DNA from: Macrostomum lignano
Lineage: Eukaryota
Length of the DNA stretch: 64,000 bases
NCBI GenBank assembly: GCA_002269645.1
Contig: NIVC01002045.1
Location: 1-64,000, forward strand
Reading direction: 5' to 3'
Shown: positions 24,401 through 55,200 of the stretch, piece by piece
How the letters are laid out: every line of letters begins with the position of its first letter
How positions within the stretch are numbered: the stretch's first letter is position 1
Made by a program: the position numbers and the translations under genes
The notes under the pieces: model-generated
Seen by the model: only the letters and a program-made list of their open reading frames with translations
Told to the model about the DNA's origin: nothing
Database searches by the model: none

Positions 24401-27400
24401 AAATAACTCCTGAAAAAGGCATGTGTAATCTCGTATAAACCATAGACATAAAGACTTTATGGGATATTATTGAATATTACCAAATAAAATCCCGGAGAAC
24501 GCAAATATTGTCACGGAAAGTCTTTATTTCTATGGATTATTATATCATATAATCTCCTCGAAATCAGGAGCAATCGAATTTAATATATGATAAACGCCGT
24601 TTAATTCATCATAGTCTATGGTTAGAATATCCTCGGCTGCAATCAATGGTCCTCGGCTTGCTACGCTCGCCTCGAGACCATTAAACGCAGCCTCGGACAT
24701 TCTAACCACAGAATGTGAATTAAACGGCGTTTATTATTTACTTAACGCCCGATTATTCTGTCCCACTTTGTCAAGGACACAAATGTCTATGGCACAATAA
24801 TAGTAATACCCATACTTTAAGGGCGTTAATGGAAAAGTCAGAGGGCGCCTCTCCCTAAAATAATACGAATAGCTAAATGGATCGAATCCCTTATAATTTT
24901 ATAGAGTTTAATGCGCGCACTATCAACTTTTTACGGCGCCCTCTGACTTTCCATTAACGCCCTTAAAGCATGGGTATTAATGTACTATACAAACCATCAT
25001 GCCATAACGTTTTTCATGAAGGTTAAAACATGCACTGTATTTCATAAGGACTGCATGGAAAGAAAGTCAGAAAAGACCAGCTTGGATATGGAGAAGAGGC
25101 GCCCAAACTTTCCGATAAAGAAGTTGAAGTACTTTTAAATTTGGCACGAGAGAGACCCAGCCAAGCATAGGGATGCTGATACAAACAGTCAGAATGGACG
25201 CTAACTTTGAAGTTAGAACATAGGAAAACAACCTAAAGATATGCTCCACAGACACAGTTTTGTACCAAAAATACACTCAAAAGAGACAAGAGGCAAGAGA
25301 CAAAAGCGCCCACCCTTTTCTCGGGAGAATCTCGTTTCAGTTTAGTGTCAAATTGGAGACTCTGGGCCATAGAAATTTGTTCTGATGTGCGACTCAATGC
25401 TCAAGATCCCACAGGATCCCATCCGTCAGGAAAGTGAGAACAGGAACCGAGAACAGGGAACTGAATGCTGTGAAGTGGCATTAATCATACCAATGGAATT
25501 GTACGGCTCGTACCAATCATACCAAAGCGTTCTCTGTCATTCATTTGTCGAACCATTACGTCAACAGATGAATGGATTCCTCTAAGAACCGCTTCTGCCT
25601 CCAACCTCAAGTTTTCAAGAGACACTCGCTCTAGCATATCCTACCAGGTACTGTTGGAAAGTACGACGCTGAAAAGGCCCTTGAGCTTCGACAGCATGTT
25701 TACCTTTGTCTTTTTTCATAAGTCAGAGAGCAATGCAAATGCTCTCAGTGATGGCCTAACCTGGAATCCATCTGACAAGCTTATCCCTGGAAACCGATTT
25801 CTAGAATTTGATTGTGCATATATAGGCTGTAGTCCTACACAGAAACGGCTGCTGGGAAAGCAAACGAGCTGCTTGTAAGGTTGCAAGGAATTGCGATAAA
25901 AGATATTGGGATTGATTAGCGACGATTACAGCATTTTCTATAGTCACTCCATTGCTCAGGCTATAAGCACGTGAAGCTAGCAGATAGCTAGCAGGAAAAT
26001 GCGGGATTAAACGATTCTGGGACTGACTATTGATTGATGCCAATAAAAATCGTGCACTCTGTGTTGGAGGCCGGCACAAAAGCTGCAGTTGCTGACCGGC
26101 ACAGAAGCAGAAAATGTATCCCTAATAGAAATTAAAGATTTTTAGGCTGATTGTTGCGATAATTTTAGCTCAGGTGTCTACAGACTGGCGCTCATAAATC
26201 ATGTTGAAAATATTCTGCCACTTTGAATCTACTACCAGCGTATTAAATACTTTGCTCTACTCTGCTAATCTCATCACAGGTATTAACTGGGCATCCACTG
26301 CTCCAGAGCAGAGAGCAGAGATTCCAGAATCGAGCCTGGCACGTACTGTAAGGGCATTGTGCTAGAACATTGTAGGCTGCAGCCCCCTTCATCCTGCAAA
26401 CAGCTCAATTTCAACAGCTGACTGATTTGCAAACACTCAACCCCTTCCAGCGCAAGCCGCTGTACTACGAGATCAACCTCATCATGCCCTGCATCGCCAT
26501 CCTCATTGTGGCCCTGTTCGGCTTCCGACTGCCGCCCGAGTCCGGCGAGCGGATCTCCCTGTCCGTCACGGTGCTGCTGGCGCTCAGCGTGTTTCTGCAG
26601 CTGGCCAGCGAGCACACGCCGACTCAGAGCGACGTTGTGCCGCTCATGTGTGAGTCTGCGAGTGCTGCGCTACCCCAGCTTTGTAGCTAATTGTTTAGCC
26701 TGTAAAACTTATTTAATTGTTTGCAGATATTTCTGCACTTGTTAGCACCAGTTCCCTCACACTGAGCAAACACAGGGCTGAAAATGCTCTTGCAGGGCAA
26801 GATAAAACCGCACGCTAAAAGTACACAGACAGGTCATGGCTACAGCCGGTCAGGCGAGAGCAATGCGACTCATACAATAGGACACACTGTTGCAACATGT
26901 ACGCCAACATGGGTTTGTAGCTAACAGGGGTTGCAGCCTCGTAGTAACAGCGTCGGACTCCCGGCTGAAAAGTCAAGGGTTCTATTATCGACCCACTCGG
27001 AACAATTTGAGCGAAAACTCTTAACTCTGCATTGCTTCAGTTCACCTAACTGTAAAATGGATTTCAGCATTAGCTGGGGGTCATTGAGGATGTGTGGTAA
27101 CCCCCCAGTCCTTGGACTGAATAGTTGTACGCAGCCTTCAGATGCGCCGCGTAATAGCTGCGGCTGAGCTGTTTGGTTGCACATCATACAGCGGCCCTGA
27201 CTTTCAGACATGTGCATTGTGAACTCTCTTAGCCTTGAATGTTGGCCCTCATTTGGGGTGTGAATTGAACAACACCCCCGGCCAATTTCCGTGAGGTGAG
27301 CAAGCTCTAAACTATTGGAACCAGTGTCGTGGGCTTGAGAGCCAGCGTTTTTGAGCGTACCACGGAGCTGTTAAGCTTATACTTATACTCTAGTCTCTGA

Positions 27401-31460: not shown

Positions 31461-33064
31461 AAATTCTCATAGACTCTTTGTTTGTTTTGTCAGCGAGACA
31501 GCCACCATAACCGCCGCCTCTCCCCCCTTCCCTTATCTGGCCAGATGTGTAAAAGGGGTTTTAAAATTGACTAACTTTCGGCTGCCATAAGTTTGCTCCA
31601 TGTGATCTTCCTGCAGCGTGATCTTCCGTAGGGAAGAAATTGGCTCGTCTTGTCGCCCGAAGGAACTGGACGAACCGTGGGATGCTGTCGGGCTGGCAGA
31701 CCTCGTCAATGGACGGGTTCGGCCCGAGGTAGCGTAGCCGGTCTCTCGTAAAAAAGAGCAGTGGCAGACAAAGTGCTGAGCATATTCGTTGTCATATTAG
31801 CAAAAAGGGAAAAGTTCACTCTCGAGGTCGCCTCGGAGAAAGCAGTGTCTGTCGAGGTAGCCATGGCCTAGCCATGGCCTGTAAGGGTCATGGCAAGGGC
31901 GCGAGTTTTGTTCCTTGAATACGAGTATCCTTCCGGTTTTGGTTCAGAAGGATGTTCCTGAGCCTGCGAGAGGAGCACGGAACCGCGACTGCTAACAGTT
32001 CTGGGTGCCCGCCCATCTATCCCTGTGAAGGGGATCACAGGGAATGTGCCCGTAGATGGGATAGGGACCAGGGGCTCAGAGCCTAGGAAGGAGCCAGCGC
32101 CGCCCCTCTTAGCGAGGATGTTTGCCAACTCGTTTCCAAAGAACCCTGCGTGCCCTGGGATCCACTTCAGCCTGACAGTATTGCTACTGGCCAGGAGGTT
32201 GAGCTGCCGGGCACAGTCAGCGACTGTCCGGGAGTTCGTGTTGGTGTGGCAAAGGGCCTGTAAGGCCGCTTGGCTGTCAGAGTGGATGAGGATAGTCTCT
32301 CCTCTCGTACCCTTGGCCCATTTTGGAAGATCGTAGAAAGTCTGACAGTGTGCTGGGGTGTGCTGTGCTGCTAAAAATAAAAAACTATTTGTGGCCGTGC
32401 GATGGCTGAACATGTACATGATCCACCTGGGGAGATGTGAGTGCGTTTTCCTCTCACAGGGGGCTCTTTGGAACGTTATCGAAGGCGCTAATGATGTCCA
32501 GGAAGATCCCCAGTGCGAAGCCGTTTCCAGGCATGGCCTTCTCTAGTTTATCGCCCAGGACAGGCAACGCGCTTTCGGTGGAGCTACCCGCCCGAAAGGC
32601 GTGCTGGTTCTCGCTGAGAGGCTTGTCTTCATCTCCCCAGAGAGAAGGCGCCAGAGCATCAGTCTCTCCATCAAGCTTGACCATGGAGGTCAGTCGGATC
32701 GGTCTGAAGGATTTGATAGAATGGTATTCCGGGCGCCCTGGCTCAGGGATAAAAATCCCCTTTGCCTCGGTCCAAGCCTGAGGGACATAACGAAGCGTTA
32801 TGCATGGCCGAGAAAGGCTGCAAAGCTTACGCAGGAAACCTGGGCATTTAACCGCCTCTCTTAGGAGGGCAGGTACGATACCTTCGGGTCCTGGAGCTTT
32901 GAAAGGTTTGAATGAGTTAGCCGCTCTTCTCGTGATGCTGTCCTCCGTGATGATAGAGGCAGCCAGAGCGTGACCTCCTTCCAAGTGATCCGGAGTGGTC
33001 TGGTTAGCCGTCTCCTTGGGGAAAAACGCAGAGAGCATTACGTCAAGCGTATCCCTGGGTTATC

Positions 33065-33141
33065 GCATACGAAGGCGTATTCAGCATGCCAGTGAAGTAT
33101 GAGACAGACTAGGCCTACGAGCTAAGGTCTGCGATGCTTCA
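33065..33141 (+). ncRNA. Candidate HDV-like self-cleaving ribozyme at the element 5' end
   Basis: Aligns without gaps to 52223-52147(-). Compensatory changes fall in the putative P1, P2 and P3. P4 (CAGAC/GUCUG) is followed by CGA. See findings. Confidence 0.55.
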
Positions 33142-36100
33142 CGCCTGCCCCTATCTTTAGCACGTCAAGGCTGGTGGGAGGTCTGCACCCTCTATTTGCT
33201 TCTGGCAGCTGCAGACCCCCCCCCCCACGCTGTCTCGCAAGTCGACCCAGTGGTACTCGTCCCCGCGTGTGTTCAAGGCAGACCCTAGGGCTGCTGGACA
33301 GACTGGGCTCCGGCGCTGGGGACCCATCCTGTGGCTTCGGCCGAATTTGGGCATGCGGGTCTGGCTTGCCAGCCTGCAGGCCGTGGTACTGCTTAACGTA
33401 CCCTCTAATGCCTAAGGTGTTTGACCGTGCCGATGGGCTGGAAGGCCGGTCGCTAGCGGTCCCTTTTTCAAACCGGCTGGCTTGGGGTGTCGGCCAGTCG
33501 GGTACTCAACTCGCATAACGAGTAGCCCTCCCCCGCTTTTCAGCTATGGCCACTAATGCCAATTTTACCAATGAAACTGCCCCGTCGCCACTGGCCCACC
33601 GTGATCAGCCGCTCCGGTAGCTACCACTGGTAGCTCCAACGTCAAACCTGGTCCAACCGGGCCAGCTAACGCTGCTGCCGAGCACCCTGGCCGCCATTCT
33701 AGTCGACCGCGCACGGCCGAGTCCCGACGGCAGCGAAACATCCGCCGCAACCGTAAGCGGCAGGAGAAGCGGGCTGCTGCTGCGTCAGCAGAGGGCGGAC
33801 AAGCCGCGGTGAGGCCTTCGGGAACCACCGCAGCGGGAAGGCCCTCTGGGGAGTCCGGTGGCGCGGCTGGGCCGTAAGGAACCGCCGTGTCCTCGGACTC
33901 TCAGGGGGGCAACCCTGCCGGCCTACCGCCTTCCAAGGACAAAGCGGCCCCGCTCAAGACCTCCGAGTCCTACGCCTCCAAGGTCAAGCAGCCGCTGCAA
34001 CCCGCCGTGATGATCCTCGGCGGAGATTTCGACCTGACGCCCGAGCAGCTCGACGTCGCGTAGCGTACCATCGACGAGGTCCTACTCAAACTAACCCTTG
34101 AGGGCGTCTTCGTGGACATCGCCAAGTCCACCAAGGCGAACAGGTGCATCCTTCTGTGGTGAAAATCCGAGGAGAGCACCCAGCTCCTGCGGGATCAGCT
34201 GCCCCAAGTTCGACTGGCACAGCGACCTGGGCCAGCTGACCTTCGCCCTGGAGAGCGAGCGGCCGAAGACCATCCGCCATCGGATTTGGGTCCCGGCCGA
34301 CAGTGCAATCAAGTCCGGGGAGCAGCTGCGGCAGCTCCTGCTCAAGCGGCACCCGGATCTCGACGCCAGTGGTCTTGTGTAACCACAACACGGTCCGCAA
34401 GGGCACGACCGGAGCCACCGTCATCCTCGGCCTGACGGAGGGATGGGCCAAGCGGCTACCGCATGGCTCAAACCTCCACCTTAGTCACCACCAACTGACC
34501 ATCCTCCGCTGTGAGGAGGGCAAAGTGGAGACTAAGAACGACGGGAAGCGCGCCGCACCCGGAGTTGGGGCTCAGGCTCCGCCGGCCAAGCGGCAGCAGC
34601 AACCCGATCCCGAGCCTAACAAGGCCATTCTCGTTGCTGAGTCTGCCTCGCGCGGACGTAGACCCGCCCGCAGTAACCGGCGGTCCGGGCTAATCCAGCG
34701 CGCACTCGACGAAGCTCAGTCTCTGAGACTCCACCTCGAGCGGACTCGTGCCACTCGTAAAACTACTCAAAGCCAACCAAAGGAACTGGACGACGGCACG
34801 GCTCAGCCATCCAACTGGTGGGATTGCCAGACTCCCGACGGCGGGGCGCAAGGCGAAGGCAGCAGCCGTACCCCAGTCGCTGGGGAGGAGGGCGGTGCAG
34901 CGCGGCTAGGTGACTCACCTGCCGTGGGTGCCGTGTCCGCCTCCAGGCTGAGCCTGAGCCAATGGAAATTGACGACTCACCGATGAGGCTTAGAATCAGT
35001 TGCTTTTCTCCTCCCCTCGACAGTAGACATGACCGTCTCCCAGGGTATTCACTGCTTGCAGGTCAACCTGCAGCACAGCACAGCTTCAGTCAACCTCTTG
35101 AAGCACACTGACCAACACGCACCAGGGATTATCCTTATCCAGGAACCTTGGACGCTAAGGGGCAGCCCCCAACAAGTCCCCACCGGCTACCAGTGTCTAA
35201 CCGCTGGCACCCGGGAGGGAAACCTGGCACCAAGATCCTGCATCATGGTGTCCAGTTCTATTAACGCATGGCTCAGATCGGACCTGTCCACCAGGGACAT
35301 CTGCGTCATCCAATCCGAAGACATACTCCCTGGGAGGACTACCCTCATCACCTCGGTTTACCTACCGGGCGACGGCGAGATGATCCCAGGAGAGCTTGTC
35401 ACACTGGTCGAGCTCTGCTCCTCCAGAAATTATGAGCTGCTTGTGGCAGGCGATATCAACGCCCACCACACCCACTGGGGCAGTTCTGATATTAACCAGA
35501 GAGGTGAAGACTTCCTGGCTTATATAGCTACTACAACCCTTGAGTTCTGTAACTCGGGTAGTACCCCTACCTTCAATAACGGACGCCGATCGGAGGTGCT
35601 GGATGCCACCCTCGCCACGCCCAGGCTCTTCCAGAGCACTAGGGAGTGGCAGGTGCTTCCTGAGGCGTCCCTCTCCGATCACAAGTTCATCTCTTTCACG
35701 CTGGCCAGCGCCCGAAACGCAGGCCAGCTTTACTGGAAACGGAATGCTAGGAATACCGATTGGACCGCCTTCAGGCTTGCCGTGGAGGAGACCTATCGTT
35801 GCACTAGCACTCCAGTCTCCATCAAAACCTGCGAGGAAGCAGATGAATCTGTGGCCGTACTTACGGACTCGCTCACTGCTGCCTGCGAAGCCTCATGCCC
35901 ACTAAAGGCATATAAAGGCAAACAGTCGGCCCCATGGTGGAAGCCGCAGCTTGGCGACCTCCGTCGCAGAGCCAAAAGGCTTCACCGTAGGGCCCATAAA
36001 ACTAAAAACCCGGCCGACCAAACCGCCTACCTGAACTCCATCCACGAGTTCAAGAGGCAGGTTAGGAACGCCAAAACCAACAAGTGGCGCGAATACTGTG

Positions 36101-38759
36101 AGGAACTTGAGGGCTCCCGCCCCACCTCCAGAATCGTTAAAGCCCTCACTCTGGACAAAATGTCCAAACTCTCCTCAGTAAAGAGAGCCAACGGCTCGCT
36201 CACTGAGAACCCAGGAGAAACGCTGGAGGCGATGCTAACAGCGTTTTTCCCGAACGAGCCAGCCAGGCCCGACCCCCCTGATCACTCAGTGGGCGGACAC
36301 GTACTGGCTGACTCAATCATCACGGAGGACCACGTTACTAAAGCAGTCTCCTCCTTCAAACCCTTCAAATCCCCAGGACCGGACGGCGTTGTGCCAGCGT
36401 TCCTGCGAGAGGCGGTGAAATGCACCGGTTTCCTGCGGAACCTTTGCCGGCTTCTGAAATTTTGCATTGTTCTCGGCTTTGTTCCGAAACCCTGGACCGA
36501 GGCCAAGGTGGTTTTTATCCCCAAGGCCGGCCGACTGGACTACCGGTCCATTAAATCTTTCAGACCAATTAGCCTCACCTCCACACTGGTAAACCTGTTG
36601 GAAAGACTGGTGCTTTGGCGCCTCCTCTCTGTGGAACTGAAGAACACGCCGCTCAGTGAGAACCAGCACGCCTTCCGGGCAGGCAGGTCCACGGAGAGCG
36701 CGCTTCACGTTTTGGTTGACATGCTGGAGAAAGCTGTTCTTGGTAATGGCTACGCTCTCGCTGTCTTCCTCGACATTGTTGGAGCCTTCGATAATGTCCT
36801 CTTTAAGGCTTTTCACAGAGCTCTACGTGCTAGAGGAACCCACTCGCACCTCACCTGGTGGATCATGTATATGATCAACCACCGTACTGCCATCGCACAC
36901 CTGTTGGGCCACCAACGGACGGTAACTGCAGCAAAGGCAGCCCCCAGGGTGGTGTCCTCTCTCCAGTTCTCTGGAACATGGTGATCAATGAGCTCCTCTA
37001 GGACAGCCATCTTGACCCCATCCTTACGGTCGGTTATGCCGATGATGTCAGCCGTGGCATCCGGACCGTCACCTGAAACCCTTAGGGATCTTCTGCAAAA
37101 CTTTATTCGCTCTGCTGAACAATGGGCGGACAGGTGCGGTCTCAGGCTCACCGAGACCAAAACTGTCGCGATCATGTTCACCAGCAGGGTTAATTGGCGC
37201 ATTCGCCCACTGAAGCTTTACGGGGTGGAAACCCCATCCTGAAGCAAACCAAGTGTCTCGGCGTTACGCTGGACCACCGGCTGAGCTGGTTCACCCACGT
37301 TTAGGCCAAAACCAAAAAAGCCCTCGCGATTCTTGCGCAACTGCGCAGAGCCGTTGGCACCACCTGGGGCCTCACCCCAAAGCGGCTCTGGTGAATCTAT
37401 ACCGCAATGTTCCGGCCGGCCGTCACTTACGATTAAAACCTGCCACGAAGCCCTTAAAAAGGTGCAGGGACGCGCGTGCCGCATTATCTTGAATGCCCCG
37501 CTCTCTGCTCCCTTTGTCGGCCTAAAACCACCCGCCGGCTCATCGAGGCTGGCGTTAGCTTCAAGCCACAAAGAGCGATGGCGAAGCGCAAGCTTCTGCC
37601 GCACTCTGACCTGTGCCTTAAAGTTCTGGAGGAGAGTGGGAGTGCGGCTGTCATTTCGGACGCTGTGCCGCGCTCCCTCAATCTCTACCAACGCTTCAAG
37701 GTCACAATCCCCTCTAGGGAGAACGCCAACGACAGCTGGGCCCCTCAGGAGGTTTACTGCTTTACTGACGGATCCTCCAAAGACGGTTTATCCGGCTTTG
37801 GAGTCTGCATCCTTATCAATGGCCGCGTGATCGTCACTCACGCCCAACACACTGGTAGACTCTCCAGCGTCTTCCAGAACGAAGTCCTTGCCATCAGCTC
37901 CTGTGCAGCTGAGCTCCACTGCAGGGACTTCAAAGACAGAAGAATCTTCTTCCACTCTGACAGCCAGGCCGCTTTGCAGGCCGTGTCACACCAATACGAA
38001 CTCCCGAACAGTCCTCGACTGTATCGGGCAGCTCAACAAGCTGGCTCGGAGCAACAACGTCCGGCTTACGTGGATCCCAGGACACGCCGGCTTCAAAGGT
38101 AACGAGCTCGCCGACTCCCTCGCTAAGGCGGGTTGTTCCGGATCGCTCCTTGGCCCCGTGCCCCTGGCCCCCATCCCCGCCACAGTCATTAACCGTCAGA
38201 TTAACGACTGGGCGGACATCCTGCACTTGCGCAGATGGGATGGTATTTCCAACTGCCGCCAATCCCGTGCAATCCCGTCCCGCCCAATCCGCCCCTCAAG
38301 CTGCGGAGAATCCTTTTAATCCAAAATCGAAAAGATATCCGCGCTCTCAATATGACCTTCACAGGTCACGGTTGCTTTGCCAGGCACTGTTTCCTCCGAA
38401 GTGTTCGCCGGAGCGAACTCTGCCCTTTCTGCAACCTCGAGAGCGAAGACGCCAAGCACTTCGTCTGCTACTGCCCGGCCTTCAACGGAGACCGGCTCAA
38501 CCACCTCAGGCCCAACCCGTCCCTGGACGACGCTTGCCGGCCCGAGAACATCCCACGGCTCATCCGGTTCCTCCGGGCCACCAAGCGAGCCTCCGTCTTC
38601 CCCACCGAAGACAACGCTGCTGACAGGACCGGCAGACCTCTCTGACCGGCCCCGCGCCCTAGCCTATGCGGGCCTTTCTGGGATTAGCGGAATGGGCGAC
38701 GCTCGCCTCCCCGCTGCGTCTTCGGACCGCCCTGCAGCTAAGTCAAAGTAAGTCAAAGT
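33065..38759 (+). mobile_element. Full-length I-group (LOA/R1-like) non-LTR retrotransposon, ORFs disrupted
   Basis: ORF1 remnant at about 33546-34986. ORF2 from 35029: AP endonuclease (LQVNLQHS, IQEPW, GDINAHH, SDH), RT (FRPISLTS, QHAFRAGRSTE, GYADD), RNase H (FTDGSS, SDSQAAL, WIPGHAGFKGNELAD) and a CxxC-H-C knuckle. Tail (TAAGTCAAAG)2. 13-bp TSD TCCCTGG(G/A)TTATC at 33052-33064 and 38760-38772. Confidence 0.93.
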
Positions 38760-40093
38760 TCCCTGGATTATCTGTCGACGTGCCGTCGGTGCGTTTAACC
38801 GAGGAAAGCTTAGACAGTTTGTCCAGCGTAAGCGCTTTCACAATTCTGAAGGTGGGGCGTGAGCTCTCTAGCTCCGTGCAGTATTGACGCCATTTCTGAG
38901 CTTTCGCGTTCCTAACCTGCCTTTTAAACTTATGAATTGCTTCATGATAGGCGGTTTGGTCCTATGGGCTCTTGGTTTTAGTTGCTCTGTGGTGGAGTCT
39001 CTTAGCTCTGCGACGGAGGTTGCCGAGCTCGGGATTCCACCATGGCGCAAATGTTTGTCCTTTATGGGCTTTTAAATGGCAGGATGTCTCAAAGGCGGCG
39101 GTTAGCGTTTCTTTCAGCACAGTGGTGCACTCATCCGATTCTTGGCATGACGTGATCGTTGATAGTTGGCAGGAAAACCGATGGAACTCCCTTAGGGCTA
39201 GCCCGACGGTTTCCCAATCAGTGTTTCTGGCTTTCCGTCTCCACGTAACGCGATTTGCGCTGCGCGTGGCCATCAGGTTAAAGGAAATGAACTTGTGACG
39301 AAGGGGGATGATGCCGAAAGCACCCGCAACGCCATAGTGCTTTGACAGTGGCATCGATCACTTCCGACCACCGTCCGTTGTCAAAAGTAGGGGTGGACCC
39401 AGAGTTACAGAACTCGAAGGTCGTGGCGGCAACGTAGGCTAACAGTTCTTTGCCTTTTTGATTAATCCCTTGCGTGTCTCGGTGCCGTCACTACCAGCCC
39501 CTCCGCCTTGTTGGTCAGGTCGATGCAGGTGACATCAGCCTTCTGGTGAGTGATAGCCTCGAATAAGTCAGTCAGCACCTCCCCTGGCCCTCTGGCTGTT
39601 GGAGAGGAGCGCGAGAAGTGCGGACCCGCCCAAGATGCGCTAAGAGTTGAGCTGTAGAGAGAGCTTTCCTTATCTGGCCTTCATTCTCTGGTCTTGGGAC
39701 GCAGGCAGTTTGCAGCTTGCCATTCAGAGCGGGGCTTTGGCTCCTTGGGGTCTCAAAAGTTTGCTTCACTCCCTTCCCTACCTTTACCAACCCCGCCATC
39801 CAGCTTTTCTGCGCCATGAACCATTGGCATATGCAAAAGCCCCCGGCCCGACTTTCCAAGCCCCGGCTGTCGACACCAACACCCCGCATTCCCCTTGCTC
39901 CACTCTGCCCCAGTGTCCCAGCAACAATACAGCCAGAGTTTGTCTCAAAACTTAACCCCCACAAGTCCATAAAGACGCTTTGGATCTTTTTGGCAATTCC
40001 TTTTGGGAAGCCAGAGTTAAAAAACAAAATTGAAAAAACGGCTAAAACAATGATGAGCTCAAGCTTGAAATGCAGGCCTAACCGTCAGCGTTG

Positions 40094-43200: not shown

Positions 43201-46200
43201 TTATTATTGATTAAGCCAGCAACTGTACCATGTTTTAGAATGCAGGACCGGATGCGCCTGTCTGCGATCTTGAAGCGTCCAAGTACTTTTTAAAGAATAA
43301 ATGATTGCATCTTTCCTACAAAATATTAACCTCTTGAAACATGATTAGCTATTTGTACCCTGACTATTACCTACTTTTATTTAAATTGCGCAATGTAAAG
43401 AATATCAAAGGTTTTTCCTGTTGGAAAGCATTGAAGATTCAACTAATACATGCTATCATTAATTACGGACAGCTCATAGCTACAGGTTTAATCCTTCAAT
43501 TTCTTCAGGACGAACTCAAGCAGACAGTCTCCATGCTCACCTGGAGGAGAATGGTGAGTGTGCTTAGTTCTTTAAAAAAATATTTCCTGATTACGCCTCT
43601 ACTCAAGTTGCATTGATGCTGCAGTCCTGGTACGACACCAGACTATCATGGCGGGGTCGCGTCTTCGATGGCAACCTGAGCTTCAACTCTATCAGCAGCA
43701 TTAAAATTCCAAACAGCCAGATCTGGAAGCCGGACTTGGTCGTGTACAATGAGTGAGCCGAAATGCTTGTTTGATCTTCCATTTAGAATTGCCAAGTAAG
43801 TTGCGAAAGCCGCGTCGCCTACTGATTGCGGCCAAGCCTGCTCTGAAAGCTGATAGCGTCAATCAAAACTAATGAAATCACCAAACCGTCCACCCTTCGC
43901 AGTGTGAGGAAAACGGAGCTCGACTGGTCCCTCTACTACGCGTCAATTCAATCTGACGGCCTCGTTCGACTCAACACCCCCCAGCTGATGAAGCTATCCT
44001 GCCCAATCAATGTCCAACTGTTTCCTTATGATAAGCAGGTGTGCAGGATGAAGATCGGCAGCTGGACAATGGATGGTTTTGAGCTCAACTTGCTCAACGC
44101 GAGCACGCACGCTGACCTGTCCTCGATGGCGGAGGACAACGAGTTCTGCCTCGTCAAGGCGCCGCTTGAACGACACTTGATAAAGTACGCGTGCTGCGCT
44201 GCTCCGTACCCGGACATTACGTACAGCATTTTGCTGCAGGTAAATGCGGCTTGTCAACCGGGCACTTTTTGGAGCTGTTCGGTGCACTTTCGATGCCAGG
44301 GCTTGAGCGTATCAGAGCTTACATGTAGCTCGCGTGTGCGATTTGTTGGCTAAAATGAGGGCATGAGAGCCTGTGGGAACTTTTCGTGGTTTCGTATTAT
44401 AAATTTTGACCATTGACGCTCCCAAAAGGAATTGAAAACATCATGCCATAATGTGTTTATTATGGTTCATTCATACGCTGACTCTATGGAAAGCAAACAA
44501 GAAAAAAAGACCAGCTTGGATATGGAGAAAAGGCGCCCAAACTTTCCAATAAAGAAGTTGAAGTACTTTTAAATTTAGTACGGGACAGACCCATTTTGAG
44601 AGCCAAGCATAGGGATGCTGATACAAACATTCAGAAAAAAAACAGTGAAATAGACGCTAATTCTGAAGCTAGACCTTCGGAAAACAACCCAAGTGACCTA
44701 AATAAATGATTTACGGACACAGTTTTGTACCATGAATACACTGAGCAAGACAAAAGCGTCCACCTTTTTCTTGGGAGAATTTTGTCTCAGTTTAGTGGCA
44801 AATCGGAGACTCTCCGGGCCATAGACATTTGTTCTGATGTGCGACTCAGTTACGTATTGCTCAATCCACAGTTAAGATAGACAGTTCTGGGAAAACTAAT
44901 GACAACAGGAAATGAGAATAGGGAACTAAATGCTGTGAAGTGGCATCGATCATACCAATAGCAGCAAGCGTTCTCCGTCAGTCATTTGTCGAACCATTAC
45001 GCCAACAGATAAATAGACTGTTTTAAAATCGCTTCTGCCTCAAAAATAAACTTTATTGTCCATGGTTGTTCTCAGCAAGCGTCCCACGTTTAACCCAACC
45101 ATAGACAAATTTTGTCTATGGTTGCCATCGAATATATAAACTAATTTTGTCTATGGTTGCCATCGAATATATAAACTAATTTTGCCTATGGTTGCCATCG
45201 AATATATAAACTAATTTTGCCTATGGTTGCCATCGAATATATAAACTAATTTGTCTATGGTTGCCATCGAATATATAAACTAATTTTGTCTATGATTGCC
45301 ATCGAATATATAAACTAATTTGTCTATGGTTGCCATCGAATATATAAACTAATTTTGTCTATGATTGCCATCGAATATATAAACTAATTTTGTCTATGGT
45401 TGCCATCGAATATATAAACTAATTTGTCTATGGTTGCCATCGAATATATAAACTAATTTGTCTATGGTTGCCATCGAATATATAAACTAATTTTGCCTAT
45501 GGTTGCCATCGAATATATAAACTAATTTGTCTATGGTTGAACTGCCTGTTGGATCGATTTACCACTCAACTAAAAGGCGAAATCTCCCGAGAAAAGTGTG
45601 GACAATTTTGTCTGTTGCATAGGATTTGTGTCCCAAACAGCTTCCCATAGGTGGGAACTATGCTTAATCCTAGCTAAGAATAACCCCCAGCTTTATGCAA
45701 AGCATCAATCTAAGTTTCAATCTAAGTTGGATCTCCAACTTTGCTTTATGAAACAGCCCCCTTCAGCATCTCAAGCTGTCAGAGTAAGGCTAGAAAAAAG
45801 CCTAATCGTAGCTAACAAAGTTTTCAAGAAACACTCTCTTTAAAATCTCCAACTGTTAGAGAATATGATGCTGAAAAGGCCCTTGAGCATCGACAGCATG
45901 TTTACCTTTGTCTTTTTTCATAAGTCAGAGAGCAATGCAAATGCTCTCAGTGATGGCCTAACCTGGAATCCATCTGACAAGCTTATCCCTGGAAACCGAT
46001 TTCTAGAATTTGATTGTGCATATATAGGCTGTAGCCCTACACAGAAACGGCTGCTGGGAAAGCAAACGAGCTGCTTGTAAGGTTGCAAGGAATTGCGATA
46101 AAAGATATTGGGATTGATTAGCGACGATTACAGCATTTTCTATAGTCACTCCATTGCTCAGGCTATAACCACGTGAAGGGAACCTGCTCATAAATGCTTT

Positions 46201-49200
46201 TTTAATTCTTTGCATGCAGTTTTCGTGGTTGGGGGTTAGCGTTTTGGCAGAGGCAGAGAGCTAGCAGGAAAATGCGGGATTAAATGATTCTTGGAGTGAC
46301 TGTAGATTGATGCCAATAAAAATTGTGCAGCTTTGTGTTGGAGGCCAGCACTTAGACTTAGACTTAGCTGCAGGGGGCTCCGCGCGTCCGGAAGCAGCGA
46401 GGAGGCGTTGCCGCCCATTTCGCTAACCCTTGGCGACCACGGGCAGCTAGTGCTGCGGTGTCGCGCAGGGAGTTCCGGTGGCGCCGGCGTCCGCAGCGCG
46501 GTCCCCCTCCGGAGAGTCCAGGAGGTGGATTGTCGCTCGCCCGGTAGCCCTTAGGTAGCGGACGAGCTGGCAGAGATTCTCGGGCCTGAAAACGTCGTAG
46601 AGGTCCGGGTTTGGGCCGAGGTAGGTGAGCCTGTCCTGAGTAAAGGCGGGGCATTCACAGATGAAGTGCTCCGCATTCTCGACGCCGGAGAGGCAGAAGG
46701 GGCATTCCTCACTGCGGATTTTCTCCTGGAGGTAACGATGCCTGGCAAGACAGCCATGACCCGAGAGGGCCATGGTAACCGCCCTGATGTCCCTGCGGTT
46801 GAGTCCAAGCAGGGCCCTGCGAAGGGCGGAGGAGGGACAGGGGACAGCCGCGCGGGATTGCCGGCAGTCGGGGACGTTAGCCCACCTCTCCCTGTGCTCA
46901 GAAGCCACCCACTGGTTGATCCGAGTGGTGACAACGGCGATGGGGGTGGGGGCCACGGGCAGGGGACCAGTGAAAGAACCGGTCGAGCCAGCCTTGGCCA
47001 GGCGATCGGCCAGCTCGTTGCCGGGGTGGCCCGAGTGCCCGGGGATCCACCTTAGGGACACCTTGTTGGAGGCGCCTAAGCGGTTGAGCTGCCCGATGCA
47101 GTCGAGGACTGTACGCGAGCAGGTGGTGGTGCGCTTAAGGGCGTGAATCGCCGCTTGACTGTCCGAGTGGAGGGTAATTTCCTTCCCCCAGACGTGCTGG
47201 TTGTACAGCTCCATGGCGCAGGAGCTGATGGCGAGAACTTCGTTCTGGAAGACGGTGGAGCAGGTGCCGGTGTGTTGGGAGAAGGTCGCCACAGTTCTCC
47301 CTCCAGACACGATGCAGTAGCCGTAACCAGAGGCGGAGTTGATTTGGGACCCGTCAGTGAAGCAGTGGATTTCATGGGGTTTCCAGTTGTCTCTCGCTTC
47401 ATGGCGTGGTGGAATGCTGGTTTTGAATTTGAGCGGGGGGCAGAGCGTGGACGGGATTCCGTCCGAGAGGGTCAGCAGGCCTCTCGCTGCTTCCAGGTCT
47501 CGCAGGCTGAGGTCGCCATGCGGCCGGAGGTTCCGCTTTCTGAAGGCAAACTGCTTCTGGATTTGGACACCCGCGTCAAGCAGACGACGGGTGGTTTTCA
47601 TAGCCTCCCCTCTAACAAAGAGGTCGAGGGGGGGGAATGTCCAAGAAGGAGTTCATGCCACCGAAGGGCGTAGAGGGAGCCGCGCTCATGATAGCTCGAC
47701 AAGCGCGGCCTTGCACCCTATTTAAAACCTCAAGAACCCCTTTCACCTCTAGGGCACTGTTCCAAATGAAGCCGGCGAAGGAGATGGCCGGTCTAACAAT
47801 GGCAGTGTAAATCCACCAGAGGCGGCGGGGGGTGAGGCCCCAGGTAGCACCGAAAGCTCTGCGGATCTGCGCGAGTCGCGAGAGCTTTGCGGGGTCCAGC
47901 TCAACCTGTGGTTGAGGGTGACGCCCAGACATCTAGTTTGTTTCTCCATGGCAACAGGTTTGCCATAGAGGGAGAGCGGTTCGATCCTCCAGTTTCGGCG
48001 GCTGGTGAACATGATAGCCACGGTTTTAGACTCAGAGAACCTGAGACCGCAGCTATGTGCCCAGCGCTCGGCACGGTGGATGAAGGCTTGAAGGAGGTCC
48101 CTGAGGATCGCGGGCGATGGTCCAGCCACAGTGGCGGTAACATCGTCCGCATAGCCGACCTTCTGAACAGGGTCCGGATGCGGGCTGCAAAGCAGCTCGT
48201 CCATGACTAAGTTCCAGAGGATCGGGCTGAGGACTCCACCTTGCGGTCCGCCTTTCTGGACTTCCACGGAGCGTGAGTGTCCCAGGAGGTGCGAGGTGGC
48301 AGTACGATGGGAGACCATGTACATGATCCAGCGGGTGAGGTGCTCGTGCGTGCCCCGGGATTCCAGGGCTCGCTTAAAGGCTTCAAAGAGCACATTGTTG
48401 AAAGCACCATCAATGTCGAGGAAAAGCGACAGCGCGTATCCATTGCCAAGCACGGCGCGCTCCAGCTTGTCGACAATGGCGTGCAGCGCACTTTCGATGG
48501 AGCGTCCAGGACGAAAGGCGTGCTGATTAGGGGAGAGCGGGGAGTTCCTCAGCTCAACGAGGAGAAGGCGCCAGAGCACCAGCCGTTCCATCAGTTTGAG
48601 GAAGAAGGACGTCAGACTAATAGGGCGGTAAGCTTTGGCGGAGTGATAGTCTCCCTTTCCTGGCTTGGGTATGAAGACTACCGTAGCCTCTTGCCAGGCT
48701 TTTGGCACATACCCGAGGGTAATGCTGGCCTTGAAGAGGTTGCAGAGGAGGCCGAGAAACCTGTCATTTTTAACTGCCTCATGAAGGAAGGCAGGATAAA
48801 TGTTGTCAGGACCCGGGGACTTGAAAGGAGAGAAGGATTTTGCGGCGCGAGCCGTCCTCTCTCTAGTAATGATGGTCGAAGCCAGGATCTGTCCACCCGG
48901 AGAGTGGTCCGGTGGGCCTAGCTGCTGTGCGGCACGTGGGAAAGAGCTGGTGAGCATAATGTCCAGCGATTCCCCAGGGTTCTCAGCGAGCCGGCCGTCC
49001 GGTCTTTTAATAACTGAGAGCTTTGACATTTTGTCGAGGGTGAGAGCATTAACTACGCGCGAAGTAGGGCGGGTGCCTTCTAACTCCGCGCAGTTTTGGC
49101 GCCATTTGTCGGACTTGGCTTTCCTGGTTTCACGCTTAAAGTCGCGGATCGCTTCTTGATAGGCGGCCAGGTCAGCTGGGTCCTTGCTCTTGCGAGCTAG

Positions 49201-52200
49201 CCGTTGGAGGCACTTTGCCTTGCGCCGGAGGGATCCGAGCGCCGGGTGCCACCAGGGGGCGGATTTCTTGCCTTTGTAGGCTTTAAGAGGACAGGAAGCC
49301 TCATGGGCTGTCAGGACGGTCTTGCTGAGCAAGTCTGCAAGGTCATCCACTTCCTGACAGGTGGTTGGAGCGACGGTAGTCAGCTGATCTGTCTGGCATT
49401 TCAGGGTTTCCGTGAAAGCCGTCCAGTCTGTGTTCCGGAAGTTCCTTTTCCACAGAATGTGAGGCTTGGGGCAAGAGGATTGCAAATGAAAACGAACGAA
49501 GCGATGGTCAGACAGAGACTCCTCTTCGTCCCACACCTCCTAGTCCTTGACTAAAGGAGCCAAGCCATGGGAGACGAGGGTAACGTCGAGGGCCTCCGTC
49601 CATCGCCCGTTGTCAAAGGTGGGGGTTCCACCAATGTTGCAAAACTCAGTGTTGGTGGTGCAGATGTAAGCAAGGAGTTCCTCGCCTCTGCTATTGGAAG
49701 TATTACTGCCCCAGTGGGTGTGGTGAGCGTTGATGTCGCCCGCCACCAGCAGCTCGAACCTACGGTTAGAGCAGTAGTCCACGAGGGAGGTGAGGTTGGG
49801 TGGAACCGCGGGGCCATCGCCAGGGATATAAATCGAGGCGATTATGACCGTGCGGTTGGTGATAATGTGGTTGGACTGAATGACACAGAGATCTCTGTCA
49901 GAGAGGTCCGGTCTGTGCCAAGCTTTGAGATGGGTAGACACGAACATGGCTGCTCTGGGGTTTTGAGGGTCCTGAAAACAGTCAAAACCAGCAGGAATAT
50001 TCGGAATCTTACCTTTCTTTGTCCAGGGCTCATGGAGTAGGATGATGCCCGGTTTCGCAAAGTTTGCCACCCGCATCAGGTTGGTCGAGGCCGCGATGCA
50101 GTGGTGTAGGTTTAGCTGCAGGATGTCCACTCCGGGGATTCCACGAGTGGTTCGCGCAGCTTCTTGCCGGCTCAAGGCGAGTTGTGCAGGAGAGCTGCCT
50201 CTTCTGCCTCGCCGATAGCTTCAGACTCCAGCTCCATGGGCTCCTCCCGGATGGATCCATGGTCGAGGGCAATGTCGCTGCCTGGGCGGCATTCTCGCTC
50301 TCGGCCTGGTTTTCCGGGGGGGGGCGCAGTGGTGACACTGGGCTGGCGGTGGCTGCGGTTGGGGGCCTTGGCGGTGTCCAGCAGCTGCTTCGCGCGCTGA
50401 GTCAGACCAGAGCGGATAGTGTTCCGGGCGGGTTTCCGGCCCTTTCCACGTCCGCCTGTTGCTGCAGCTTTCGCGGCTTTCCCTCTGACGGGGTCCACGT
50501 CCTCGGAGGGGTCGTGACGGCCGGGAGCTTCTTTTCCTGGGCGTTTCCGCCCGGCAGAGCCCCCGACAGCCCGCTTACGCTTCTCCGGGGGCGGTGGGCG
50601 GGTGGCGTCAGACTCAAAGCTAAAGAGCTGAATCTGCAACAGCCCGACAGAGATGATGGACATGTCCGGGTAGCGGAGCATCCAGCTATCCGACAGTCCA
50701 AGAATAGCCGTGAAACCGTCTCCGCCCGGCTTGGAGATGGTCTCGTGAACTACGACACCGTTTGCCGGTAGCTCCGGGTTGGAAGCCACTAGCAGGTGAC
50801 GCAGCTCGTCGGCCTTGGTGATGCAGCTGCGAGCCGGGATCCAGGCACGGTGCCGGTGTGTCCGGGGTCGCTCGTCCTCCCTGTAGATGAACAGGTTCTC
50901 CAGCTCCGTACCCCAGTCGAAGGTTTTCAGCAGCTCGAGGAGCTGCTGTCCTGACTGGCTGTCGGCGGGCTGGATATGGAGGGCTTGGTCCTCGACTTTC
51001 GTCTTTTGGACTCGAATAGTAGTGCCGCTCAAGGCCATCTTGACCAGGTGGGAGTCCAACCTGCGCCAGATAAGGTCGAGCTGTTCGGCCGTAAGAGGCG
51101 TCTCCTGGCCTTGGATAACCAGGGCCGGCTGCCTCTTGGCCATAGCCGCGTAGGTTCGCTTTGGCTTTGTGGTTTGGCCAGCGCCCCCCGCTTTGGATCC
51201 CTCCACAGCCGTGGGAGCTACCACACGGGCAGAGGTCCGGTCACGGGAGGGGCCAGCCGCACCAGGAGCTTCGGCGGCACCTGACGCATCAGACCGGCGC
51301 GCGGGGTCCACCCCCTTGTCGGATGTCGGCTCCTCCGCGGGGTTCGCAGAGTTACCGGCACCCTCCTCAGAGGTGGCCGGAGGGGCGGCTTTCGCATTCC
51401 TCCGTTCCTCCGCTTTGCGCTGGAGAAAGGCTTTGTAGCGAGCAATGCTACGGGCCTTCTTTTTCGAAATCTGAGGTCCGCTGTCTTGTCCAGCCACTCC
51501 GGTATTATCCTGAGCGGCGGCAGCGGCAGATTGAGAGGCACCGGGGGTTCCGGTGTTGCGAATGTCCGGCTGGGCCGCGGTGCCAACCTCGGTTGGTGCT
51601 CGAGCAGCCTCGGACGTGTCGGAGGTAAATGAATACTCCATGAGTCGCTGAAAGGCGAGTGGGGACTAGAGGTGAGAAGCCGCTGGGCCGTAACCCCAAA
51701 CCCAACAACCAGGCCAAGAGGTAGCGACCGGGGGGTGGCTTAAGCCCGTACCGGCCCGACCGCTAGCAACCGAGAAACTCCCCGGCTAAGAGCCCGGCTT
51801 GGAGAAACCAGAGGCCGAACCAAAGGACCATCAGCGCGGTACTACACTGGGCCCTTGGGGGAAGCAGGAGGACTGCCTCCGGAGCCTGCGGACTGGCCGC
51901 ATACCCTGTTAAGGTCAGAGGGTGATACCTGTTCCTCAGAGCCGTGGCCAGAGGTACCTGATACGCACAGGTTCACTTCCGGGCCAAAAGGCCACGGATG
52001 GGTTGCCGCCGCCGGAGCCCAGTCAGTCCAGCAGCCCTAGGGCTGCCTTGAACACATGCGGGGCGCGAACCCCTGGGTCGGCTTGCGAGTCAGCTTGGAG
52101 AGAGTTCTCCTGCCATTCCTGCACCAGAATAGAGGGGGTGCAGGTGTGTAGGATCGCAGACCTTAGCTCGTAGGCCTAGTCTGTCTCATGCTACACAGGC

Positions 52201-55200
52201 ATGCTATACCCGCCATTGCATGCTGGAGGCCAGCACAAAAGCTGCAGTTGCTGACCGACACAGAAGCAGAAAATGTATCCCTAATAGAAATTAAATACTT
52301 TTAGGCTGATTGTTGCGATAATTTTAGCTCAGGTGTCTACAGACTGGCGCTCATAAATCATATTGAAAATATTCTGCCACTTTGAATCTACTACCAGCGT
52401 AATAAATACTTTGCTCTACTCTGCTAATCTCATCACAGGTATTAACTGGGCATCCTCTGCTCCGCTAATTGCCTGTGGTCTTCACTTGGCATCTTTTCAA
52501 CCGGTATTATTCGAGGGGTTTCCAATAATAGCAGTTAAAATTCGATGTACCGACTGAACGCGAAGGCAGAATCTAATGTAACAGGCATCACTGAATTTAT
52601 AAACATTCCACAGTTCTAATAGACGTTTATTTCTGTAAAAGTTATGGCTAAAGCTGCAACAAGGGGTAAAGGGTAAAGTTACGCCAAGCCGAGGCCATAC
52701 AGTCTGCCATGCAGAATCGCCGTTAACTGATGACTTTTGGACAAAGTGACCCCTTAACTAAACTAATTCACCTCCTGGAATCAGTGTCCACTGCAGATTC
52801 AACTATTTGGCGGGCGAAAACAACTCTAATAGCATAAACCGATGCTCAATTGCTTGTATATATTTTAGCTCGCACCATCGCAGTGACAGCGTGCCAGTGA
52901 GATAGAAAGAGCGTGCATAGCTTCTTAGCTTCTCCCATTGCCTTTGGAAGCACACAAAGCGGCGATGACCTTTTTGCAGAATGCACCAAATATCAAAAGA
53001 ACAGCGTACGCTCAAACTCAAGGGCTCGACTTAACGCAACTCCACCCCTTAAACTCCTAAAATATCTTGGCCAAGAACTTCCCAGCAGAAACTCCTCTAT
53101 CCACTCACTCTCGCAACTGCAAAGCGTCTCTACGTCCATGGCCTAAGGATAACCGACCACAGAACCTTCTGAGTCTCCCGAACAGCTACCACCTGACTTT
53201 GGTTAGTTACCTGTTGATAAATTCTTACGTAACAAGCGAGGAGCAGCATGGAATTGGGGGAAGCAAACGCAAAGAAAGTTGGTGGTAAGCCGTCTGCAGA
53301 GGCAGAACAGCAGTCAGATGCTGCTAAGATACGCTGAGAGGCTTCAACTAGTGCAAGAACAAGTGGGCCGAGCAGCATGCTTGTAGGCAATCTAAGAGTT
53401 GCGAACGAGTGGTAGCAGAGGCAGAAATGCGAGACTCTGAGACAGTGCTACAACAATGCGTTTAGGGAGATCAGAGAGAGGGGGAGAGCTGCGGGGCATT
53501 CTGACCACGCAGGCTATTTTGTGAATCAGGAAGTTCCACAAGTAGCCACTGCAGTCACTGATTCAGCTGGGTAGGCCAAGGATAATCCTCAGCTAAGCAG
53601 TAAAGCATGATTACAGCTTTGCCTTTTTGTCAGGCATTTACGACGTATAACCTGAATGGATTCCTGAATACATTCCTGTACTTTTGAGCATCTGCATTTC
53701 TTGATGGAGATAGATGCGTATGTGCTCAAAGCCGATGGTTTTCAATGAAGGTTTTCAATATGAGCCGGCTAGCAGAGCATTTTATATGTGATAATCAATT
53801 CTGACGTCTGCATGAAATCCTAGTTTTTACTCAGCAAGACTTTAGTTTATTTCTGAAGGAGAGGGAGAGAGGGAGAGAGAATAAAATAGCTCATTTCATA
53901 AACTCTGTTGCATTAAATTCTGATTTTCAATTTAGTCGGTACACCGATTTTTATCTCAACTTTTGGACACCTCTCGTAGTCATGTGCTTCATTATAATGT
54001 TTTAAACGATTTTACATCGTTTTATATTTTCCCGACGGTAGCCGCAAGTGTCAAATGCGTCATTGTCACACAACCGGCGAGAGGCATTACTGCCCATTCG
54101 ACCATAGACAACTCTATAGTTGAGAAAAACAAACTTGTGAGAAAAATAACCTCAAAAGCTGATGTTTATACTCAGTATAGTATGCTAGGTACTGGTATAT
54201 ATATTTTGGTAAACGAACGTATGAAACATTTATCAGCGCTACTAGACTTAAAAAACGGATTCAAGGTTGTTTCGTCAAATGCCGTTTCGTCTAAGAGATT
54301 TTTTGGAGAGTCGTTTCGTCTAACGGAGATTTGAAGCAACTGGAAAGCAAGATAATGATTAATATGTGATGGAGAAGTAATTTTACAGACATCAGTGAGA
54401 TGTGGTGTGTACGCCATAACTTGAAAGCTGCATTTGTTTGTAAAAAATGTTTACAATTTGGCGTTCACTGCACGACACGTTTAAAAGTACCTAGTGGGTT
54501 ACGACACTAAGAGAAGAAGACGTCACTACATTCAATGAAAAATTGGTCATTAAATCATGAAGATAATACAGCGAGTGTCAGACGACTCCACTGAGCAGGC
54601 ACATACGAGCGTAAGCGCGGGGATACGTACGCAGTCACACACACAGGCACACACAAGTGTGTACAGCCGCTCCAACTTTAATTATCGTTAGAAATGTACA
54701 CCTACTTCACTGTTCCTTGGGGGTTGGCGCTCAAGGGCGTTGATTGCACGAGCAGACTCAAGCAGAGATTCCAGAATCGAGCCTGGGCCGCTGGCACATA
54801 CTGTAAGAACACTGCGCTAGAACATTGTACGCTGCAGCCCCCTTCATCCTGCAAACAGCTCAATTTCAACAGCTGCATTGATTGATTTGCAAACAATCAA
54901 CCCCTTCCAGCGCAAGCCGCTGTACTACGAGATCAACCTCATCATGCCCTGCATCGCCATCCTCACTGTGGCCCTGTTCGGCTTCCGACTGCCGCCCGAG
55001 TCCGGCGAGCGGATCTCCCTGTCCGTCACGGTGCTGCTGGCGCTCAGCGTGTTTCTTCAGCTGTCCAGCGAGCACACGCCGACTCAGAGCGACGTTGTGC
55101 CGCTCATGTGTGAGTCTGCGAGTCATGCGCTACCCCAGCTTTGTAGCTAATTGTTTAGCCTGTAAAACTTATTTAATTGTTTGCAGATATTTCTGCACTT

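Follow-up and report, generated by a model that had tools for sequence, protein, structure and literature searches.

Self-cleaving RNAs of the hepatitis delta virus (HDV) type are encoded at the 5′ end of several families of retrotransposons without long terminal repeats (non-LTR elements). They are the reference here for a 64,000-nt stretch of the flatworm Macrostomum lignano (assembly GCA_002269645.1, contig NIVC01002045.1, positions 1 to 64,000 of the forward strand; hereafter the window), in which two long interspersed nuclear elements (LINEs), E1 and E2, very likely begin with an HDV-like ribozyme cutting just before their first base. Self-cleavage is predicted, and the probability of this reading is put at roughly 0.75.

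The R2 ribozymes of Drosophila, silkmoths and other hosts likewise occupy the 5′ end of a non-LTR element and have the same double-pseudoknot topology as the one predicted for E1 and E2, with a P1 of 6-7 bp whose 3′ strand comes directly after P3/L3, a variable P4, a J4/2 carrying the catalytic C and a constrained A, and a J1/2 that may be very long (PMC3774820). In silkmoths this joining region measures 216-498 nt, that is, up to about 500 nt, and in honeybee the two strands of P1 lie more than 700 nt apart; moreover, P3, L3 and P1.1 are conserved among R2 ribozymes, and P2 has at least 5 bp, often with mismatches (PMC3774820). On the other hand, R2 inserts site-specifically into 28S ribosomal DNA and is cut from an rRNA co-transcript, often upstream within the 28S sequence, whereas E1 and E2 have two open reading frames (ORFs), an AP-type endonuclease and an RNase H in ORF2, and a P1 lying wholly inside the element. 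Structured J1/2 domains are known in large HDV-like ribozymes such as drz-Agam-2-1 of the mosquito, in which an extra stable domain with a closing stem adjoining P1 and P2 speeds cleavage by "pinching" both helices together (PMC4908430). The domain predicted in E1 and E2 is of this kind but larger (135-170 nt, with three hairpins plus the closing stem), and it holds a hairpin of unusual sequence conservation. As predicted for E1 and E2, the HDV-like ribozyme of L1Tc in Trypanosoma cruzi (Pr77/L1TcRz) takes up the first nucleotides of a LINE without site specificity and cuts at +1; its P1.1 may be a single pair, and the same DNA may be an internal promoter (PMC3185411, PMC3383444). L1TcRz is, however, compact (77 nt), whereas the core of E1 and E2 is predicted beyond nt 140.

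Altogether, the predicted core most resembles the long-J1/2 R2 ribozymes and drz-Agam-2-1. HDV-like ribozymes that occupy the 5′ terminus of dispersed non-LTR elements were also reportedly described, for RTE and the LOA-clade element Baggins, by Ruminski and colleagues in the Journal of Biological Chemistry in 2011. Those ribozymes process the 5′ end of the element and possibly aid its translation. They differ from the ones predicted here in host phylum (Platyhelminthes for E1 and E2) and in element lineage, and no sequence similarity between them and E1 or E2 was found, nor did any drz or HDV model of Rfam match. A search of a paper library turned up no earlier report of an HDV-like ribozyme in flatworms. 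If the prediction is true, a flatworm LINE lineage would join the hosts of these ribozymes, and the exact 5′ end of dispersed elements would be explained without dependence on the insertion site.

Element ends and the shared 5′ module

The ends of both elements were set by window self-comparison and direct reading, independently of any 5′ similarity. E1 (33065..38759, plus strand) is a LINE copy complete from end to end, though its ORFs have decayed. A target-site duplication (TSD) of 13 bp, TCCCTGG(G/A)TTATC, borders it at 33052-33064 and 38760-38772, and the two halves of an older element that it interrupts, E3, lie beyond on either side. E2 (46352..52223, minus strand), also an end-to-end copy and further recognised by its ORFs and Pfam matches, is flanked by the TSD TGGAGGCCAGCAC at 46339-46351 and 52224-52236. 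Moreover, the empty (uninserted) paralogous target site of E2 is found at 26065-26077 within a segmental duplication (25609-26304 against 45818-46351 plus 52224-52463, 90-97% identity), one copy of which holds E2 while the other keeps the empty site. In both elements the base next to the TSD is G1, and the transposition intermediate therefore began at G1; according to the TSDs and the empty site, this is where the RNA has its 5′ end, so that the start assigned to these elements in an earlier note on this DNA was exact. The target sites of E1 and E2 are unrelated to each other, and the elements therefore do not look site-specific, unlike R1, which inserts at a specific site.

Homology between E1 and E2 starts exactly at G1, the flanks upstream being unrelated in the alignment. 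Direct reading and alignment bear out the similarity described earlier: E1 from 33065 (plus) and E2 from 52223 (minus) can be aligned gap-free for 84 nt, 13 of which differ (positions 5, 7, 9, 14, 15, 17, 18, 27, 31, 34, 72, 75 and 79), and the 37-nt identical run corresponds to nt 35-71. The greater divergence of the ORFs is likewise real, as the two share about 66.6% of their ORF2 DNA but 84.5% of the 84 nt, and a 35-nt core of the module occurs at these two places only in the window. Four compensatory double changes between E1 and E2 fall inside helices of at least 4 bp, a number to be expected from random substitution at P of about 0.01; since this exceeds chance, RNA structure is under selection somewhere in the 84-nt region.

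Searches with the ORF1 and ORF2 proteins yielded one usable close relative, the Logan contig L001 (1-6492). It holds a full-length element with intact ORFs, an ORF1 homologue of 50% identity and an ORF2 protein 75% identical to that of E2 and 58% to that of E1; its first base is the homologous G1, and the same 84 nt can be aligned with no gap. The contig starts exactly at element nt 1 and extends about 545 nt beyond the 3′ end of the element, an extent that would match a 5′-processed, 3′-read-through transcript, depending on the library type. Metagenome, viral and prokaryotic collections, scanned by DNA pattern and by ORF1, gave no further copies, and neither did an nhmmer profile of the 84 nt in the window or in related loci. 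The similarities of the three elements are in conflict, as E2 and L001 share only 66.7% of the 84 nt, far below the value for E1 and E2, whereas in ORF2 DNA they are the closer pair (74.8%). This suggests either an exchange of 5′ UTRs (untranslated regions) between families or a host-specific constraint.

A predicted HDV-like core behind a long J1/2

The published descriptor of HDV-like ribozymes comprises P1 (G/RNNNN..:..Y), P2, a P3 with three Watson-Crick pairs, L3 (TYYHCG∗Y), J1/4 (RN), P4 and J4/2 (CNRA∗) (RNArobo supplement Figs S11-S14, PMC4870747). Each 5′ UTR was searched for partners of nt 1-6/7, and a perfect partner was found in homologous columns of a second conserved block of the 5′ UTR, at nt 202-208 in E1, 165-170 in E2 and 189-194 in L001. 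The change of A3 to C3 in L001, disruptive to the P1 proposed earlier, is compensated in this new P1 by a change of U to G. Directly 5′ of the P1 partner, GGG and CCC enclose UUCGCGC in E2, UACUCGUC in E1 and UCUCCGU in L001. A P2 is formed by CCCAG (CUCAG in L001) with a downstream CUGGG (CUGAG), extended by GCCG/CGGC, and just 5′ of the P2 3′ strand stand CAGA (E1), CUGA (E2) and CUGC (L001). The nested double-pseudoknot order P1-J1/2-P2-P3-L3-P3′-P1′-J1/4-P4-J4/2-P2′ is present in all three sequences, P2/P3 and P3′/P1′ being contiguous, and L001 has an additional A-U pair where P2 meets P3.

The predicted ribozyme of E2 occupies the first 213 nt of the element (52223-52011, minus strand). 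Its P1 5′ strand GCAUGC (52218..52223), with the predicted cut just 5′ of 52223, makes six perfect pairs with 52054-52059, including G1.U170, and is followed by the structured J1/2 domain (52083..52217) and by the catalytic core (52011..52082), which the descriptor scan finds with one deviation. Within the core, the P2 extension pairs 52079-52082 with 52011-52014, P2 pairs 52073-52077 with 52018-52022 and P3 pairs 52070-52072 with 52060-52062, enclosing the L3 UUCGCGC (52063-52069). The P1 3′ strand (52054-52059) leads to J1/4 GU (52052-52053), P4 (52027-52051) and J4/2 CUGA (52023-52026), whose first base, 52026, is the predicted catalytic C. The P2 extension, P2, P3 and P4 are already present in the unconstrained minimum-free-energy fold of E2.

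In E1 the corresponding region is the first 250 nt (33065-33314, plus strand). The P1 5′ strand GCAUAC (33065..33070), with the predicted cut just 5′ of 33065, makes five of six pairs with 33265-33270, A5 facing a C; in a register shifted by 2 nt, however, there are seven perfect pairs, between element nt 1-7 and 202-208. The J1/2 insertion (33071..33240) is a structured domain according to folds of the single sequences and to the RNAalifold consensus. The descriptor scan then places the 5′ strands of the P2 extension (33241-33244), of P2 (33246-33250) and of P3 (33251-33253), followed by L3 UACUCGUC (33254-33261) and the P3 3′ strand (33262-33264), while the P1 3′ strand (33265-33270) and J1/4 GU (33271-33272) come from the partner search and the descriptor together, and the P4 hairpin (33273..33298) from context reading and folding. 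The whole 3′ part (33299..33314), again from the descriptor scan, starts with J4/2 CAGA and the predicted catalytic C at 33299 and continues with the P2 3′ strand (33303-33307), a 3-nt loop and the 3′ strand of the P2 extension (33311-33314). The outer P3 pair of E1 is broken (U×C), and position 2 of its L3 is an A, which pairs with U208 in P1.1. Given these defects in P3, P1 and L3, the ribozyme copy of E1 is probably weakened or dead, which agrees with the broken state of its ORFs.

A comparison of the three cores with the descriptor shows a P1 starting purine-pyrimidine with six of six pairs in E2 (G1.U170) and in L001 (G1-C194), and with five of six (A5×C202) or, when shifted, seven of seven in E1. 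P3 and L3 agree exactly in L001 (GGG/CCC, UCUCCGU); E2 has an intact P3 and one L3 base off consensus, and E1 one broken P3 pair and, in UACUCGUC, one off-consensus base. The loop is 7-8 nt long and of the UYYHCG(N)Y type. J1/4 reads GU in E1 and E2 and AG in L001, and P1.1, between L3 positions 2-3 and J1/4, is a single pair in E2 but has two pairs in E1 and in L001. J4/2 follows CNRA in E1 (CAGA) and E2 (CUGA), while CUGC of L001 lacks the A. P2 consists of 5 bp, a 1x3 internal loop and 4 bp in E1 and E2, and of 6+4 bp in L001, and the P4 hairpin is kept in L001 with an unrelated sequence, in line with the variability known for P4 (PMC3774820). Of the letters fixed by the descriptor (G1, the U and CG of L3, the C and A of J4/2), E1 and E2 have every one, and L001 has five of the six. 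The predicted core thus agrees with the sequence and structure definition of HDV-like ribozymes, the Rfam models being the only test that it fails, and catalysis is predicted.

In a first attempt, a home-made "canonical" descriptor with J1/2 capped at 60 nt gave dozens of matches per element and was dropped. The published descriptor was implemented with J1/2 widened to 250 nt and a P2 of at least 5 bp, and was run unanchored on both strands of the whole window. With at most one deviation, the core of E2 was the only one returned, and its predicted site, 52223, is the first base defined by the TSD; the scan of L001 returned site 1 only, so that E2 and L001 both lie within one deviation of the widened descriptor. 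When the sequence was anchored at nt 1 and the rest dinucleotide-shuffled, a fit this good was reached in 0 of 20,000 shuffles for E2 and in 1 of 20,000 for L001, while the fit of E1, with three deviations, was reached in 15 of 20,000. Five other cores at two deviations in the window (near 39237, 59695, 60934, 26324 and 6825) were set aside as chance, shuffled windows giving about 5.3. Of the cells in the alignment of the three cores, 95.5% pair, and double changes are seen at four pairs, namely P1 position 3 (A3-U to C3-G), one P2 pair (C-G to U-A) and both pairs of P1.1.

Following the proposed mechanism, the element would be transcribed, for example as part of a longer host transcript, and the J4/2 cytosine (52026 in E2, 33299 in E1) together with a bound Mg2+ would cleave the bond 5′ of G1, as expected from the chemistry of the family. 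Cleavage would free the element RNA from the upstream transcript, leaving an RNA that starts at G1 with a 5′-OH, and new copies would begin at G1 beside the TSD, each carrying the whole ribozyme. In such a structure P1 and P2 are probably kept close to each other by the closed J1/2 domain, in the manner of the "pinch".

Other readings of the 5′ leader

Several observations weigh against the presence of a ribozyme. There are three sequences only (E1, E2 and L001), two of them from one window, and the pair counts come from hand-built, N-padded alignments that lean towards the model. By descriptor, the distant relatives L002-L007 (33-37% ORF2 identity) show no such core; they also lack a homologous 5′ module and any Rfam ribozyme match, which is a weak negative, as their contig starts are not established element 5′ ends. 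Run without an anchor on shuffled windows (128 kb, both strands), the widened descriptor turns up about 0.5 cores by chance in each, and significance therefore rests on anchoring at the element end. J1/2 measures 135-170 nt against a descriptor limit of 50 nt, and P2 of E1 and E2 reaches an internal loop after 5 bp where the strict descriptor asks for 6-7 contiguous pairs. The off-consensus L3 base in each of E1 and E2, the J4/2 of L001 and the single P1.1 pair of E2 count on the same side, as do the competing pairings C198-G171 (P4 register), nt 2-6/33-37 and the second GCAUGC at nt 20-25. Finally, no HDV-family model of Rfam (HDV, CPEB3, drz) matched the window scanned at gathering score, the 5′ UTRs and the cores alone at E up to 10, or the related loci. 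In our reading these models depend on particular sequences, and a J1/2 of this length would be beyond their span. If the prediction is true, ribozymes with more than 130 nt between their P1 strands escape compact-fold searches and Rfam models, and anchoring a descriptor at TSD-defined ends recovers them.

The related LINEs jockey, I and F are established cases of an internal promoter with its start at the first base. In this line, a reading without catalysis would make the 5′ UTR an internal RNA polymerase II promoter and/or a protein-binding structured RNA, with the start at G1 and a coincidental descriptor fit in a G+C-rich leader. Such promoters are also mentioned, in general terms, in the R2 literature (PMC3774820). 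The reading draws further support from the 84 nt, which are closer between E1 and E2, of the same genome, than between E2 and L001, the reverse of ORF2 and a pattern fitting host constraint or 5′ UTR exchange; the lack of an Rfam match and the rate of unanchored chance cores agree with it as well. However, a promoter acting at the DNA level predicts neither compensatory changes nor G.U pairs in P1, P2, P1.1 and the J1/2 stems, the chance of the anchored fit is at most about 5e-5 per sequence, and the catalytic letters are conserved at the required places. Moreover, promoter and ribozyme can coexist, as in L1Tc Pr77/L1TcRz (PMC3383444). An absence of catalysis is held to be unlikely. The narrower view of the 84 nt as promoter or hairpin only, with no ribozyme, was dropped once complements of nt 1-6 turned up at homologous sites of the second block.

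The earlier note had already proposed an HDV-like ribozyme in both elements. Its class, the predicted cleavage site 5′ of G1 and the role in capping non-LTR elements find support, while the fold and its coordinates do not. That fold was confined to nt 1-77, with P1 2-6/33-37, P2 13-15/71-73, P3 16-19/29-32, P4 41-67 and C68 as the catalytic base. All its helices and pair changes exist in the sequence (5-34 A-U to G-C, 17-31 U-A to A-U and 14-72 U.G to G-C, with 18-30 and 15-71 kept), as do G1 opposite A38 and an alternative helix 28-36/70-78 with a covarying 31-75. In its favour, all eight E1/E2 changes at paired positions keep pairing, three of them as double changes; 88% of cells are paired in the three sequences, which 7 of 500 shuffles equal; and both E1 and E2 pass a relaxed compact descriptor, which 2-5% of shuffles also do.

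The third lineage, however, breaks this compact fold, since on L001 P2 keeps one of three pairs and P3 one of four, and P1 acquires a C.U mismatch (C3×U36). L001 fits the relaxed descriptor only with a P1 mismatch and with shifts of P2 and P3, which are non-isosteric, and 37% of shuffles do likewise; the canonical compact descriptor is passed by none of the three sequences. Furthermore, G1 is unpaired, facing A38, P2 has 3 bp and P1.1 at most one pair. The gain from P1 and P3 together over P4 is no more than about -3 kcal/mol in E1 and E2, and in L001 they destabilise the fold, while a competing hairpin of nt 27-79, which uses the same nucleotides and covaries, is far more stable, by 9-25 kcal/mol relative to the compact fold. 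Conservation argues in the same direction: the compact "P3/L3" (nt 13-32) has 3 of 20 invariant positions and the "P4" 20 of 27, and a variable P3/L3 with a conserved P4 inverts what is known from members of the HDV-like family such as R2 (PMC3774820). The nucleotides in question belong elsewhere in the model, where covarying J1/2 helices account for them, nt 11-21 as the closing stem of J1/2 and nt 27-79 as a hairpin within its domain. The compact fold of nt 1-77 was rejected, and its being the active one is the least probable of the readings considered. Instead of C68, the descriptor puts the catalytic C at 33299 in E1 and 52026 in E2; the catalytic core very likely lies 140-250 nt downstream of its former placement, and far from being a "non-canonical variant", it is predicted to be close to canonical save for the long J1/2.

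The descriptor also marks a second site in each element, 33084 in E1 and 52204 in E2, arising from a duplicate GCATGC at nt 20-25 (33084-33089, plus; 52199-52204, minus). As these nucleotides fit the same P1 3′ strand and the 5-34 pair occurs in three forms (A-U, G-C and G.U), one may think of a conformational switch regulating the timing or site of cleavage, in which the P1 5′ strand alternates with the decoy nt 2-6/33-37, or nt 1-6 with the duplicate. Such a switch seems quite improbable, given that L001 lacks the duplicate and has C3×U36 in the decoy helix, that no genomic copy starts at nt 20, and that with three sequences extra pairings of this sort are within chance.

The J1/2 domain and further features of the elements

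According to the model with the downstream core, the 84 nt shared by E1 and E2 comprise the P1 5′ strand (nt 1-6) and part of the structured J1/2 insertion of 135-170 nt (nt 7 onward). In all three sequences this insertion folds into a closed domain made of a closing stem, hairpin B and two further hairpins. The closing stem joins nt 11-21 to the last 10 nt or so before P2 (33075-33085 with 33229-33238 in E1; nt 11-21 with nt 130-139 in E2); seen in the folds, it is 86.7% paired and shows four double changes, among them G13-C to A-U and U16-A to G-C. The RNAalifold consensus of J1/2 has compensatory changes at 10 of 38 pairs. Hairpin B (nt 27-79; 33091-33143 in E1, 52145-52197 in E2), found by folding and by RNAalifold, covers both the "alternative helix" and the "P4" of the compact fold, and holds the 37 nt identical in E1 and E2, although their ORF2 DNA is only about 67% identical. 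If the prediction is true, this would be a natural, very large and well-structured J1/2 domain in which the pinch model could be tested.

An invariant GCTAAGGTCT in this 5′ hairpin (element nt 57-66) resembles the 3′-terminal motif of the elements, and so does the invariant GCUAAGGUCU of the hairpin with respect to their common 3′-terminal GCUAAGUC. The 3′ ends of E1 (38730-38759, plus), E2 (46352-46380, minus) and L001 (5930-5947) all read CCTGCAGCTAAGTC(A/T)AAG, and short tandem repeats occur at the 3′ ends of E1 and E2. Tentatively, J1/2 might be more than a structural pinch and form a second functional module inside the ribozyme, either an internal promoter, in a Pr77-like dual system, or a binding site for an element protein linking the recognition of the 5′ and 3′ ends.

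E1 and E2 had been called full-length, which is right for their ends but not for their ORFs, as the reading frames are broken in both copies with the sole exception of the intact 489-aa ORF1 of E2 (50172-51641, minus). ORF2 of E2 is in three pieces, and a fragment of ORF2 of E1 (35029-36984, plus) has Pfam matches to the endonuclease and reverse transcriptase domains. By Pfam, the domains of ORF2 are AP-endonuclease, reverse transcriptase and RNase H, a content compatible with the RNase H-bearing I/LOA/R1/Tad group that does not by itself single out one clade; ORF1 had no Pfam match. The best protein matches are Macrostomum lignano entries, with 84% identity for ORF1.

Directly before the ORF1 ATG there is a candidate 3′ splice acceptor, TTTCAG/CGACYC (51642-51653, minus, in E2; about 585-600 in L001), and in the M. 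lignano gene model P0002 of UniRef a host BTG-like exon is joined at exactly this acceptor point. Such an acceptor-like site might permit (trans-)splicing that strips the ribozyme leader.

E1 is a nested insertion that splits the fragment of the older related LINE E3 (32392-33064 plus 38773-39424, minus strand), which lies on the strand opposite to E1 and is about 70% identical to its ORF2 region. Regarding the distant relatives, partial matches to metazoan signal recognition particle RNA (42.9 bits, E 2.9e-8, below the gathering score) were found in L002 (283-369) and L003 (111-197), the match sitting in the 5′ UTR of a distant relative with 37% ORF2 identity, and tandem repeats of about 52 nt occupy the contig start of L006 (1-150), upstream of ORF1. 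Window self-comparison also revealed tandem repeat arrays at 62849-64000 (step of about 54 nt), 45101-45539 (about 70 nt) and 8470-8897 (multiples of about 11 nt).

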